Below, one piece after another: positions 9,796 through 22,118 of a stretch of 64,000 nucleotides of DNA. Under the pieces are notes generated by a model, which did not search any database, was not told the DNA's origin, and saw nothing but the letters and a program-made list of their open reading frames with translations. Location of the stretch: assembly GCF_022045235.1 (NCBI RefSeq), contig NW_027266286.1, positions 74,958,001-75,022,000 of the forward strand, in the 5' to 3' direction. Within the stretch, counting starts at the first letter, position 1; each line of letters starts with the position of its first letter. The translations under genes were made by a program, and so were the position numbers. This DNA is from Haliotis cracherodii (lineage: Eukaryota).

Positions 9796-12552
9796 TCAGT
9801 CAACTGAAATAAAAAAAAAGAAATACAGTTACACATTCCACCATAAATGAAACACAAACATCAGCTTATACATTGGGAAACAAGTTTGTTTGTTGTTTAA
9901 AGCCGAACTCCGCAATATTCTAGCTTTGTGACGGCGGTCTGTAAGTAATCGAACCTGGAACAGACAATCCAGTGATTGACATCATGAGCATAGATCCACG
10001 CAATTGAGATCGATGACATGCATCAACCAAGTCAGCAGCCTGACCAACCCGGTCCCGTTAGTCGCCTTTTACGACAAGCATAGTCGCCTTTTACGGCAAG
10101 CATGGGTTGCTGAAGACCTATGCTTCCCCGGATCTTCACGGGAGTGGTGATTATAGCATGGTGTTGGTATTAATTATCATGTCAATATCTTACGATGTTC
10201 TTTCTGGGCTTGTGCCATGATGGCGGCGTCAAGGAACTCGTCCAAGTCAACGATGCCGTCTCCTGCAGTGGACAAGGGGAGACAACTGAGAAGATGAGTT
10301 AAGTTTGGGCCATAGAATAACTTAGAGATACGCACCTTATAAAACGATATCTAGATGAGTCTCGGTCTTATTTAGAACGTCAACATCTTTAATGAGAGGA
10401 GCCATGACCTAATGGCCACTTATACTTTTCATTCTTTTCAAAGCGATGTTAAATTATTATTGATACACAAGCAGCTGTTACACCTACCCTAAGTGCATGG
10501 GATAAATGCATACTGAGTGCCGAGGGGAGGTAACTCACGTTTGAAGTCAGCCTTGTTCATGAAGTCGTGAAGCTCCTCGTCCTCATGGTCCACGCCGAGG
10601 TAGTTGGCGGCCTCCGACCTGTCCACGCGGCCATCTTTGTTGGTGTCCAGGAGCTCTGCTTGGCGACCCACGTATGTCCTGCGAAACAGAATCACGTCAA
10701 GCAGAGATGCGTGAGTGAGTGAGTTGGGTTTTACGCCGAATTTAGCAATATTTCAGCAACATCGGTTGATACCGGAAATGGGCTCCACACATTCTAGTAT
10801 CAAACACACCAACTCTTTTTAACCACTGGGTTGCCGCCCCTGCAACTGTATTTGTTGTGATTGTGAAAACATATAACGCCTACGCTAAAGAATACCCAGT
10901 CTCGATTATCCACGCAAGTTGCATAAAAAACAGTGTTTGTTGCCCGCCGCCGCACAGCAGTACTCCTGCCATGCTACGGCGGCCTGTAAACAAACCAGAC
11001 AATCAAGTGATGGACCAGAAACTTCAGTTATACGATGGCGTATTTACTGATTTTGTTGAAACTAAAAACGATATATTAATATGTAATTACGCCTTTGGTG
11101 TACAACAGCGGCGATTCTGTTGCTTATAAGTAAAGAAAAACGTATGAAACGTATCACGGGCCTAGGGCCTACCGTGTTATATGAATAAAGTTGACTGAAA
11201 GACTCAGCATAAATGATAAATGCTTCTGAGCTTCTGATGAAACTCGGGGACGAACAGAAATATCGAAAACATAGTAAATGTCTAACGTCAACGCCAGAAA
11301 ATAACCAGTCTCAATTATCCCCGATACGGATTTAATTAGACGTTTTTTGTTTGTTGTTTAACACCGAACTCAGCAATATTCCAGCTATATGACGGCGGTC
11401 TGTAAATAATCGAGTCTGGGCCAGACAATCCAGTGATTGACAACATGAGCATCGATCCATGCAATTGGGACAAGATGATATGCATCACCCAAGTCAGCGA
11501 GCTTCATCGCCCCATCCCGTTAGTCGCCTTTTACGACAAGCATAGCCCCATTTTACGGCAAGCATGGGTTGCTGACAAGACCTATTCTACCCCGGATCTT
11601 CACGGGCCTTAAAGGCAAAGAAGGGGTGAAACTAATATCATGGATCACTGACAGTGATGACGCCAGGTGTTCGCGAAAAGGGTAAGCATGTCCTGCCCTA
11701 CCGGTAGCACCCGCCGGTCACACAAGTTGCATAAAATGTAAGCGTTGTACGCCCGTGTCCGCTAGTTCTCTGGAACTGGGCTACAGTCATTGTCTTTTGT
11801 TTGTTGTTGAACGCCGCACTCAGCACTATTTCTGCTACATGAGGGGGTTTCTCTTTAGCTCAGACTGGTCGGTCCAGAGACGTTATCAGTTCTGTTTAGT
11901 ATCGTTGGCCTAACTTGCAGTGAGTGAGTGAGTATGGTTCTACGCCGCTTTTAGCAATATTCCAGCAATATCATGGCGGGGGACACCAGAAATGGGCTTT
12001 ACACATTGCACCCATGTCGGGAATCGAGCCCGGGTCTTCGGCGTGACGAGCGAACGATTTAACCACTGTGCTACCCGACCGGCCCCCTTACGAGCAGACA
12101 AACAATCATTTGATACAACAATGCTCGAGGCAAAAAGATACATATGTTTTGTTTTGTTTGTTTGTTGTTTAACTTGCACTCAGCATTATTCCAGCTATAT
12201 GACGGCGGTCTGTAAATAATCAAGTCTGGAGCATCGATCTACGCAATAGGGATACGATACCATGTATCAACCAAGTCAGCGAGCCTGACCCCGCGATCCC
12301 GTTATTCGCCTCTTACGACAAGCATAGTTTGCTGAAGACCTATTCTACCCTGGAATCTTCACCTTTTAGTAGTTATCACACGTACCTGTAATAATGACAC
12401 CCGGTCTTGATCCCGCGATGTATTTTGGGCAAATATTTGCGGCCCAGTTTTACGACTGGTTTGAAGAAGCGTCGGAACCTCCGCCGTCTCCAAGATTCAA
12501 CTTCCGGTAGAAGCAGCACCGACAACAACAGCAGCACCAGGGTCAGCTTCAT
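9796..12552 (-). CDS. Secreted precursor 1 (127 aa): signal peptide + cationic putative antimicrobial peptide + GR site + acidic EF-hand pair
   Basis: Exons 12552-12386, 10678-10539, 10262-10194 and 9803-9796 (GT-AG, 384 nt) give MKLTLVLLLLSVLLLPEVES/WRRRRFRRFFKPVVKLGRKYLPKIHRGIKTGCHYYRTYV/GR/QAELLDTNKDGRVDRSEAANYLGVDHEDEELHDFMNKADFKRDGIVDLDEFLDAAIMAQAQKEHLD*. AATAAA lies at 9744-9739. The paralogue at 19985 has the same intron positions. Confidence 0.88.
9883..10142 (-). mobile_element. SINE-like repeat, family 2 (intronic)
   Basis: Near full-length match to the other family-2 copies. Confidence 0.8.
11343..11606 (-). mobile_element. SINE-like repeat, family 2 (intronic)
   Basis: Near full-length match to the other family-2 copies. 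Confidence 0.8.
11921..12085 (-). mobile_element. tRNA-derived SINE, family 1 (Meta/MESC-like 3' core, (ACTC)n tail)
   Basis: A/B-box tRNA head, GATATTGCTGGAATATTGCTAAAAGCGGCGTA core and ACTC tail; same family as 24316, 40094, 58385 and 63171. Confidence 0.85.
12147..12362 (-). mobile_element. SINE-like repeat, family 2 (internally deleted)
   Basis: Matches the family-2 consensus with a central deletion. Confidence 0.7.
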
Positions 12553-19984: not shown

Positions 19985-22118
19985 ATGAAGCTGGTGTTCC
20001 TTCTATGTTTGACCGCTGTCCTGGTCGCCATGGGAACGGATGGATGGGGACGCAGGCGCTGGGGCATACGGTTCCGAGTTCCGCGCATTCGGATTCCTCT
20101 CCGGACACTGAAACCGTTCATCAAGCCAGTCTTGGGTACCGTGGCTAAAACATATTTCGGACCATATCACACTGGAATAAAGGTTGGATGTGGTCTTTAC
20201 AGGTATTTAAAGTGAATGTATTTATTTAAATCATACAACTACATAGTCTCGTGTTATGCCGATCTTGTTGTCGTGTTAAAGATGATGTTTCACCAACACT
20301 CGAACTTTATCAGGTCGGGACACTAAGAACGTGTTTCAAACATTGTCCCCGTGTGTGCGGTGACACCCTCGAGACATTGTTTGAGTCTAGAACTGTTGTT
20401 TACTTCCTCTTCCCGGCGGCATAAAGTAAAATGATTATTTATCATAATGTTTATATTTTTATAAATGTTTCGTTTGTGGATTTGATTATCAGTATTTTGT
20501 TCCTGTGCTTTTGATATTAATTACCCTTATGTTATAAAATCTCTTCAGTGTCGTTGAATACATTCGCTTTGTTTTATATTCAACTCGAAATCCGTGACTC
20601 GATTGGTCCTTTAAGACTTTTAGGTTCGGCAGAGTCTTGGTAACCTTTTGTCTGGAACCATGGCTAACGCAGCATGTGCCTCATGGTCCCCATAAGTATA
20701 CTTATTGACCTTATTCATATTCAGATTTCTTGCACGAACTGTTTTAAAATATCTTTAATACACTTAAGATCTTTAATCTAAAGTGTACAATTATTGCAAT
20801 CTTAAACTACAGAAAGTTTACTGGGCGTGAGGTTCAGACTTTGGACGCCAACACGGATGGGTTAGTTGATAGGTCCGAGGCCGCGAGTTATTTCGGCGTG
20901 GACCACAACGACGCCCAACTTGATCACTTCATGAACATGGCGGATGCGAAACGTGAGTTGCTGAAGACGTGACGCTAGTGGTAGCTGTAGACTTGACGCT
21001 AGTGGTAGATGTAGACGTGACGCTAGTAGTAGCTGCAGACGTGACGCTAGTGGTAGCTGCAGACGTGACGCTAGTGGCAGCTGTAGACGTGACGCTAGTG
21101 GTAGCTGCAGACGTGACGCTAGTGGTAGCTGCAGACGTGACGCTAGTGGTAGCTGTAGACGTGACGCTAGTGGTAGCTGCAGACGTGACGCTAGTGGTAG
21201 CTGCAGACGTTACGCTAGTGGTAGCTGCAGACGTGACGCTAGTGGTAGCTGTAGACGTGACGCTAGTGGTAGCTGCACACGTGAAGCTAGTGGTAGCTGC
21301 AGATTTGAACACAGTTTGTTTAGATGACACAGTTTAATTTACTAGGTCGTTATCTCGACCAGAAATGCGTGAATTAACATTTAAAGTAGCTTTGTGTTTT
21401 CGCGTATAGCGACATCTTAACTCAATGACGGTAGACGTGCAGTTTTAACTCAGCAAAGTTTTATGTTTGGACGGTGGCAAATACCTTTAGAAAAGTATGA
21501 TAGATACCTTCATAAAAGACACTTTGAAAGATCCCTATTTACTCACCATAATTCAATAGTGCGATTCAAATTATGTTGTCCTAACACTGTGGTTTAATCC
21601 ACATGGTATTAACAACATGGAAAAAACTAAACTATTGCCCACCACACAGACAAACTCCACGTGAATGTACCCTGACCACTGGCCACGTGCACATCCACAG
21701 ATTGTTGTTTTCTGTTCTGTTTGAAAGGTGATGGCACCGTGGATCTGGACGAGTTCTTTGATGCGGCGCTGGCGTTCGAGGACCAAACTCCGGAAGCTGG
21801 TAATTAAAGTTAACTTGGCACTCACAATTCTTCCGTTACGACTTGTTCCCTCAAACTTGGATGACGTGGCAGTCAGCAATGTACAAGCAACATCACGACG
21901 ACCCGAGTCATTACAGTCGACACTTACAAGCGTGGGCTACTGGAGACCTCTGCTCAGAAAGAACAGCACATGACGCACGATACCTCTCGTGTAAATGCAG
22001 TTTGTGCGTGCGTGCGTGCGTGCGCGTATGTGTTCGTGTGTGCACGTGACATAGGAACTTGTTGGTTACTATATCATGGAAAAGTCTTTAACCCGTATTT
22101 TTCATAGAGTTAAACTAA
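19985..22118 (+). CDS. Secreted precursor 2 (~146 aa): signal peptide + Arg/Pro-rich cationic putative antimicrobial peptide + GR site + acidic EF-hand pair
   Basis: Exons 19985-20202, 20813-20952, 21728-21799 and probably 22108-22118 give MKLVFLLCLTAVLVAMGTDG/WGRRRWGIRFRVPRIRIPLRTLKPFIKPVLGTVAKTYFGPYHTGIKVGCGLYRKFT/GR/EVQTLDANTDGLVDRSEAASYFGVDHNDAQLDHFMNMADAKRDGTVDLDEFFDAALAFEDQTPEAELN*. The last micro-exon is less certain; the alternative is a stop at 21807. Confidence 0.85.
20965..21302. repeat. 24-bp intronic minisatellite (GACGTGACGCTAGTGGTAGCTGCA)
   Basis: About 14 tandem copies directly after the GTGAGT donor at 20953. Confidence 0.92.

Follow-up and report, generated by a model that had tools for sequence, protein, structure and literature searches.

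What do two small genes of the black abalone, Haliotis cracherodii, encode when each joins a hydrophobic leader and a strongly basic stretch to an acidic pair of EF-hands? Both lie in a 64,000-nucleotide (nt) window (the whole stretch of DNA analyzed: RefSeq assembly GCF_022045235.1, contig NW_027266286.1, positions 74,958,001 to 75,022,000 of the forward strand), whose own numbering is used below. The two genes are genuine, already present in RefSeq, and unstudied. We tentatively read them as precursors of secreted cationic host-defense-type peptides with an EF-hand pro-domain, for which mytimycin of the mussels is the closest system in layout.

Genes 1 and 2 are arranged head-to-head, with 7.4 kb separating their start codons. 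Gene 1 (type 1) occupies 9796–12557 on the minus strand, from the stop codon back to an acceptor 5 nt before the ATG, and encodes a 127-amino-acid (aa) protein, P0151 (XP_071115008/9). Its first coding exon (12552–12386) carries the signal peptide (12493–12552), a Trp-started Arg-rich stretch, and a core with the motif H-x-G-I-K-x-G-C-x-x-Y-R, ending in phase 2 inside an Arg codon. The second (10678–10539) encodes T-Y-V, Gly-Arg (10663–10668), the first EF-hand (loop 10612–10647), and the start of the second loop, ending in phase 1 at loop position 4. The third (10262–10194) finishes the second loop and adds the helix that exits it, with a donor after ..KEH, and the last (9803–9796) contributes ..L-D-stop, with an AATAAA 51 nt downstream at 9739–9744. 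Gene 2 (type 2) occupies 19978–22224 on the plus strand, from an acceptor 7 nt before the ATG through the stop codon, and encodes a 145-aa protein, P0160 (XP_071114425). Coding exon 1 (19985–20202) comprises the signal peptide (19985–20044), a Trp/Arg stretch with two R-[FI]-R-[VI]-P units, and the core, again ending in phase 2 inside an Arg codon; coding exon 2 (20813–20952) encodes K-F-T, Gly-Arg (20823–20828), the first EF-hand (loop 20844–20879), and the start of the second loop, with a phase 1 end; coding exon 3 (21728–21799) completes the second EF loop and the exiting helix; and the last coding exon (22217–22224) adds ..A-P-stop, with an ATTAAA 93 nt downstream.

Each window exon and each split codon was translated separately by script and compared with the database proteins; together, the pieces reproduce P0151 and P0160 residue for residue, both being RefSeq Haliotis cracherodii models named "uncharacterized." An exon-by-exon check revealed GT-AG boundaries at all coding introns of both genes, with three coding introns per gene at equivalent positions and in the same phases (2, 1, and 1). 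Database searches were performed by single exon, and full-length analyses on P0151 and P0160. The exon match, the GT-AG introns, and the shared phases bear out the initial annotation of this DNA, made from the letters of the window, in its description of two spliced genes with the same intron positions and phases. Its view of them as unassembled and novel gives way to the existing RefSeq models, and two details are corrected: the C termini that it proposed (..RKILT and ..AGN) arise from reading through the third coding intron, the real ends being ..KEHLD and ..PEAAP, and gene 2 ends at 22224 rather than at 22118, so that its last coding exon falls outside the range first assigned. Orthologues in four species, together with saturated synonymous and low nonsynonymous divergence between the two paralogues in the EF-hand part, establish that the genes are real.

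The intergenic interval between the divergent genes contains an assembly gap of N at 14016–14171, outside all coding exons and coding introns, 1.46 kb upstream of the gene 1 ATG and ~300 bp upstream of a TATA-like box of that gene (13703–13711, minus strand). Since no coding exon or coding intron spans the gap, neither reading frame depends on it; it bears only on the shared intergenic spacing and on any unseen 5′ non-coding exon. A putative promoter and non-coding first exon of gene 1, predicted from the nucleotide sequence alone, span 13655–13711 on the minus strand, with a perfect GTAAGT donor after 13655. Comparison of the gene 1 and gene 2 promoters revealed no meaningful motif in common. 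Most of the intergenic space is filled by a 3.2-kb satellite (15700–18885; 71-bp unit and 429-bp higher-order unit) and a 0.8-kb minisatellite with a 20-bp unit (18892–19702). A further minisatellite, with a 24-bp unit (20960–21303), lies in gene 2 intron 2 and is the source of long spurious open reading frames (ORFs) on both strands.

The window pair belongs to a subfamily of 12 proteins from four species: two genes in H. cracherodii, three in H. rufescens, two in H. rubra, and four in H. asinina, plus one further member, P0153. The layout of signal peptide, polycationic stretch, Gly-Arg, and acidic two-EF-hand part, as first described for the window, is thus real and conserved in four abalone species. 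Database names are "uncharacterized," with one "EF-hand calcium-binding domain-containing protein 2-like." The ENA contig that carries P0153 (155 aa) is probably a spliced transcript, as its 506 bp are too few to accommodate introns of 0.6–0.8 kb. The H. cracherodii genome contains two copies only of this subfamily. Large protein searches returned nothing specific outside Haliotis, the matches listed being otherwise generic bacterial EF-hand repeats. Literature searches by RefSeq locus names returned nothing, and no paper on this abalone family was found; those on abalone or gastropod antimicrobial peptides with EF-hands returned only the mytimycin work and Hdh-SMP5, a Pacific abalone protein.

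All 12 proteins open with a leader of 20–21 hydrophobic residues bearing small residues at −3 and −1, measuring 20 aa in both window genes, and the predicted mature N terminus is always aromatic or Leu followed by an Arg run. The Trp-started cationic stretch is 39 aa long in gene 1 and 56 aa in gene 2, each with 14 Arg plus Lys, no Asp or Glu, and a net charge of +14. Across the subfamily, this part holds 8–22 Arg plus Lys and 0–1 acidic residue, with a net charge of +8 to +14 in type 1 and +11 to +22 in type 2. Its variation consists of indels and RFRVP-type repeat number, the type 2 N-part differing mostly in the number of R-F-R-V-P-like pentapeptides. After the variable part comes the core Y..H-x-G-I-K-x-G-C-x-x-Y-R, which carries the single Cys; the mature part contains one Cys in 11 of the 12 proteins and two in P0154. 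Three residues past the core, Gly-Arg is present in 10 proteins and Glu-Arg in two H. asinina paralogues. Y55, R56, and R61 are invariant in all 12, forming an R-x4-R at the junction with Arg at P1 and P6; R-x4-R is a convertase cleavage rule. The acidic C-terminal part, 66–67 residues long, is the EF-hand pair, with a net charge of −12 in gene 1, −14 in gene 2, and −12 to −15 over the subfamily. For the window genes, recomputation returned the same 20-aa signal peptides, 39- and 56-aa Trp-started stretches with 14 Arg plus Lys and no acidic residue, Gly-Arg, and gene 1 net charge of −12 that the initial annotation had listed, and all four EF loops read as it had quoted them.

Conservation is distributed unevenly along the chain, with the EF-hand pair as the best-conserved region. 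Type 1 orthologues are 97.6% identical over the EF-hand part and 65.5% identical over the N-part, which also differs by indels, in keeping with the earlier view that the cationic part is divergent and the EF-hand part conserved. Between types 1 and 2, identity is 61.5% in the EF-hand part and 40.4% in the N-part, and the Cys-containing core is 86–89% identical within each type. Comparison of gene 1 with gene 2 yields a proportion of synonymous differences (pS) of 0.78, which is saturated, and proportions of nonsynonymous differences (pN) that rise from 0.20 for the EF-hand part to 0.41 for the core and 0.49 for the signal peptide; the two paralogues appear old and under constraint.

EF-hand membership was assessed with Pfam PF13499 and PF00036 at their curated cut-offs, below which single exons alone score. 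P0151 passes with both EF-hand_7 (33.6 bits; cut-off 30) and EF-hand_1 (29.7 bits; cut-off 25.4); P0160 passes with EF-hand_1 (26.2 bits), and its EF-hand_7 score of 29.1 is just under the cut-off of 30. EF loop 1 is canonical (D-x-N-x-D-G-x-V-D-x-x-E). The best sequence matches among solved structures, over residues ~69–121, are calmodulin, troponin C, and calcium-dependent protein kinase (CDPK) lobes (E 6e-07 to 3e-05), and matches in the ESM Atlas comprise generic EF-hand clusters only, below 0.9. The AlphaFold2 model, built from the 12-sequence alignment, has a moderate predicted local distance difference test (pLDDT) score of 69.5, with the EF-hand pair at ~80. Foldseek with this model returned no match at E ≤ 0.001, calmodulin and troponin C lobes appearing only among the weak rows. 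These lobes share helix-loop-helix pairs with the abalone protein, but they belong to cytosolic sensors with four EF-hands, whereas the abalone protein has one pair, is predicted to be secreted, carries Lys at position 3 of loop 2, and has a shorter spacing between loop starts (33 residues).

The pair has a much larger kindred in the same genome. A profile of a window exon retrieved 34 weak EF-loop matches in tandem clusters on another contig, C56; an exon of one C56 relative, used in turn as the query, retrieved 44 exons (E ≤ 0.001), of which 36 lie on C56 and 8 on C23, the contig of the window. The clusters (loci L003 and L006–L033) lie at 0.72–0.84, 2.35–2.37, 53.86–53.90, and 55.90–56.06 Mb of C56 and at 21.3, 41.12, and 46.17–46.27 Mb of C23, arranged in tandem as near-identical copies. 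In the sampled loci, a W(G)RRRR peptide follows the signal peptide and is joined through Gly-Lys-Arg to an EF-hand pair. The signal peptide, which is like that of gene 1, lies in the upstream exon together with the Trp and Arg run that open a basic peptide of 22–36 residues ending in Gly; signal peptide plus Trp match gene 1 at a pairwise E of 6e-06. This upstream exon was not found by pattern in 4 of the 27 C56 loci with a pattern-found EF-hand exon. The next exon opens with Lys-Arg, and its first EF-hand is 52% identical to that of the window over 23 residues (E 3e-07). As in the window genes, position 4 of the second loop is where this exon stops, in phase 1. The position and phase of the first coding intron are not shared: it is in phase 2 and five codons upstream of the Gly in the window genes, and in phase 1 inside the Gly codon in the relatives. 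Copies are near-identical within a cluster, and between clusters the peptide is the main difference, with at least three peptide types on C56 and one more on C23. The peptides of the sampled relatives are without Cys.

The recurrence of this layout with other cationic N termini, proposed as a check by the initial annotation, extends to at least 44 further genes in the same genome, with Gly-Lys-Arg, a canonical amidation and dibasic convertase site, at the junction. Because the relatives have a like signal peptide, a Trp plus Arg run, a homologous first EF-hand, and the same loop 2 intron, the window pair is best placed as a divergent two-gene branch of an abalone family of at least 46 genes. 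In this branch, Gly-Lys-Arg appears to have decayed to Gly-Arg, a Cys-bearing core to have been added, and the first coding intron to lie further upstream. Type 1 proteins also contain an internal Leu-Gly-Arg-Lys (gene 1 residues 36–39, within 12493–12386), which reads Gly-Arg-Thr in H. asinina. Since this site roughly aligns with the end of the relatives' peptides, a shorter, 16-residue amidated peptide is a candidate alternative product of type 1.

The junction of the relatives is what inclines us, still tentatively, toward precursors of host-defense-type peptides: a Gly-Lys-Arg at this position is difficult to account for without cleavage and amidation of the peptide. Effector-peptide families classically keep the signal peptide and pro-piece constant around a diverging peptide, and the presence of this pattern here favors such a family. 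The mechanism that we propose starts with entry of the protein into the secretory pathway, predicted from the hydrophobic N terminus with small residues at −3 and −1. The EF-hand pair would act as a Ca2+-binding pro-domain that accompanies the basic peptide, keeps it soluble and harmless, and perhaps aids its Ca2+-dependent packaging into granules. A convertase would then cut at the basic site (R-x4-R with Gly-Arg), and the cationic peptide would be released outside the cell as a host-defense (antimicrobial-type) effector. Cleavage, amidation, Ca2+ binding, any antimicrobial action, and the role of the pro-domain in solubility or packaging are all predictions from sequence features.

Several observations weigh against this scheme. 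The junction of the window genes is a single Arg, not dibasic, and Glu replaces its Gly in 2 of the 12 proteins. AlphaFold2 places Gly-Arg inside a continuous helix (residues 21–66) that runs into the first EF-hand, where it would be a poor linker, with the reservation that the model is only moderate. All 12 proteins carry Lys at ligand position 3 of EF loop 2, which makes Ca2+ binding by this loop uncertain. The core is about as constrained as a folded domain, which an unprocessed protein would explain as well, and the extreme conservation of the EF-hand part exceeds what a mere charge-masking pro-piece would need. Neither do the charges match: the acidic part carries −12 to −15 while the cationic part carries +8 to +22, so the initial suggestion that the EF-hand part neutralizes the peptide fails as charge matching. 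Amphipathicity, as helix or strand, falls short of significance in the gene 2 peptide and the sampled relatives. The gene 1 peptide does favor the scheme, with a helical hydrophobic moment of 0.56 over 39 residues (z = 3.5 versus shuffles); the proposal that all family peptides are amphipathic helices was rejected, significance being confined to this gene. A complex prediction of cationic residues 21–59 with the EF-hand part (62–127) and two Ca, run without controls, scored 0.06, a result that counts on neither side of the binding question. Ca2+-gated release of the peptide is a weak proposition, as the secretory pathway and sea water are rich in Ca2+, loop 2 is atypical, and the charges are unmatched.

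Among known systems, mytimycin provides the closest comparison. In mytimycin precursors of the Mytilida, a basic cleavage site is followed by a C-terminal extension with an EF-hand domain (PMC8004829, PMC7653742), which is highly conserved and of unknown function (PMC8004829); this precedent, given in the initial annotation, is borne out by both papers. We found no other published case of an antimicrobial-peptide precursor extended at its C terminus by an EF-hand. In both families, the cationic mature region lies between the signal peptide and a basic cleavage site, beyond which comes an anionic EF-hand-pair extension, with two loops visible in the published mytimycin alignment, and in both the EF-hand part is highly conserved and the mature part variable. 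A non-coding first exon is reported for mytimycin and predicted for the abalone genes. The mature peptide of mytimycin, however, is Cys-rich (12 Cys) and antifungal, whereas that of abalone is a linear peptide that has one Cys and, in the sampled relatives, lacks even this; the mytimycin site is multibasic (..K/R-R-K-R-R..), as opposed to Gly-Arg with Arg at P6 in the window genes and Gly-Lys-Arg in their relatives; and the hosts are mussels in one case and abalone in the other. No mytimycin is present among the 150 listed of 662 protein-search matches or among 19 profile-search matches, the lists being mostly bacterial multi-EF-hand proteins, and as far as comparison by eye shows, the two families resemble each other at generic EF-hand positions only. 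Myticalins and other linear cationic precursors (PMC5577615, PMC12294457) resemble the abalone genes in their signal peptide, Arg/Pro/Trp-rich peptide, basic site (often with Gly for amidation), acidic C-terminal pro-piece, and multigene families. They differ in having, in the mussel antimicrobial-peptide precursor scheme, a plain pro-peptide without an EF-hand (PMC7653742), whereas the abalone pro-piece is a 66–67-residue EF-hand pair and the best-conserved part of the protein. The novelty here is best described as the joining of a linear cationic peptide to a mytimycin-like EF-hand pro-domain in one precursor.

The same features could instead describe a secreted Ca2+-binding protein that is never cut, its basic Arg/Trp arm binding polyanions or mineral (mucus glycans, chitin or matrix, carbonate surfaces, membranes) and its EF-hand pair binding Ca2+, possibly in shell or mucus matrix or in extracellular Ca2+ handling. 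The continuous modeled helix from the basic part into the first EF-hand suits this account, as do the conserved core and very strongly conserved EF-hand part, which fit a folded functional unit, the single Arg and non-invariant Gly of the junction, and a match, weak and below threshold, to SPARC in its extracellular EF-hand pair. Small secreted EF-hand proteins tied to shell formation are known from abalone: Hdh-SMP5 (134 aa), which has EF-hand loops, is expressed in the mantle and linked to the shell (PMC10741955). Hdh-SMP5, however, has three loops (36–48, 56–68, and 112–124), is Asp/Ser/Val-rich, and lacks a polycationic segment. Identity of the abalone family with Hdh-SMP5 was rejected by comparing its H. 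rufescens counterpart, XP_046328359, with XP_046359495/498/564 of this family, which differ from it in layout; no SMP5-type protein occurs among the 19 profile-search matches. A match to a shell-matrix protein, which the initial annotation had named as a case that would overturn its proposal, was checked in this way for Hdh-SMP5, and the two prove to be different genes. No shell-proteome report of the family was found in the literature, and the canonical Gly-Lys-Arg at this very junction in relatives of the same architecture would have no evident role if the protein stayed whole. We regard an uncut protein as doubtful, though deserving serious weight.

A released peptide might also act on a receptor rather than on microbes, the two genes encoding signaling precursors (of a hormone, neuropeptide, or cytokine-like ligand) whose product is possibly amidated and Cys-linked, with the EF-hand part as pro-domain. 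Convertases do cut a peptide from a secreted EF-hand protein in nucleobindin-2/nesfatin. Gly-Arg and Gly-Lys-Arg motifs are typical of amidated regulatory peptides, and the core, with its invariant His, Gly, Ile, Lys, Cys, Tyr, and Arg, resembles a recognition surface, not a mere membrane-active sequence. Two TGACGTA sites (cAMP response element-like, or CRE-like) lie just upstream of the putative TATA box of gene 1, at a count in the window no higher than chance. We nevertheless judge this account improbable, as receptor ligands are not usually so basic (net +8 to +22), so variable in repeat number, or present, as in the wider family, in dozens of near-identical tandem copies, all of which is typical of effectors, and the searches revealed no similarity to known neuropeptide families. 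Least probable of all is another fast-evolving secreted role, for instance in gamete interaction as a reproductive protein or in mucus as an antifouling or anti-predator toxin: the N-part carries many indels and differs between species and paralogues, and abalone reproductive proteins are basic and rapidly evolving, but type 1 orthologues are fairly conserved and no search returned lysin/sp18-type similarity.

A bolder and on balance unlikely generalization would make the EF-hand pair a dedicated, reusable Ca2+-operated pro-domain (a cis-acting chaperone, granule-sorting module, or safety catch) placed on dozens of W-RRRR peptides, with mussels having reached the same solution, or inherited it, in mytimycin. 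"EF-hand pro-domain precursors" would then be a previously unrecognized general class of molluscan effector-peptide genes, and the window pair a branch with an added Cys-bearing core, possibly for disulfide-linked dimers. A folded, extremely conserved Ca2+-binding pro-domain on linear cationic peptides has one published parallel, mytimycin, and the many natural variants of this family suit testing whether such a pro-domain serves in charge masking, in Ca2+-dependent sorting, or in an independent function. The black abalone is critically endangered, largely through infectious disease (withering syndrome), and to our knowledge very few abalone defense peptides have been described. With more than 40 genes that bear the hallmarks of secreted cationic effectors, the family would account for a substantial, unstudied share of abalone immunity and would also supply new salt-tolerant peptide scaffolds.

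Elsewhere in the window, four intronless ORFs of 244–261 aa lie on the minus strand (24809–25579, 32312–33082, 37702–38487, and 56576–57310). Those at 37702–38487 and 56576–57310 match Pfam ETX_MTX2, an aerolysin-like β-pore-forming toxin fold, above the cut-off. The ORFs at 24809–25579 and 32312–33082 are near-identical to each other; the one searched has no Pfam match, and they are grouped with the ETX/MTX2 ORFs by eye. The ETX/MTX2-like ORFs may be defense effectors adjoining the cationic-peptide genes, a defense-gene neighborhood that would lend weak support to the host-defense reading. Upstream of two of them sit ORFs at 23601–23942 and 30919–31659 (minus strand) with a 13-residue tandem repeat (..H-R-I-R-C-D-M-S-G-N-G-N-L..) behind a signal-like N terminus, which may be coding repeats or a minisatellite.

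A Polinton/Maverick-like insert spans ~41000–55100 of the window. It includes two paralogous ORFs of 225 and 235 aa (42401–43828), a capsid-N-like ORF (46299–46955), an A32-like packaging ATPase (47578–48228), a polymerase-like ORF of 1250 aa (50382–54134), and an rve integrase (54059–55009).

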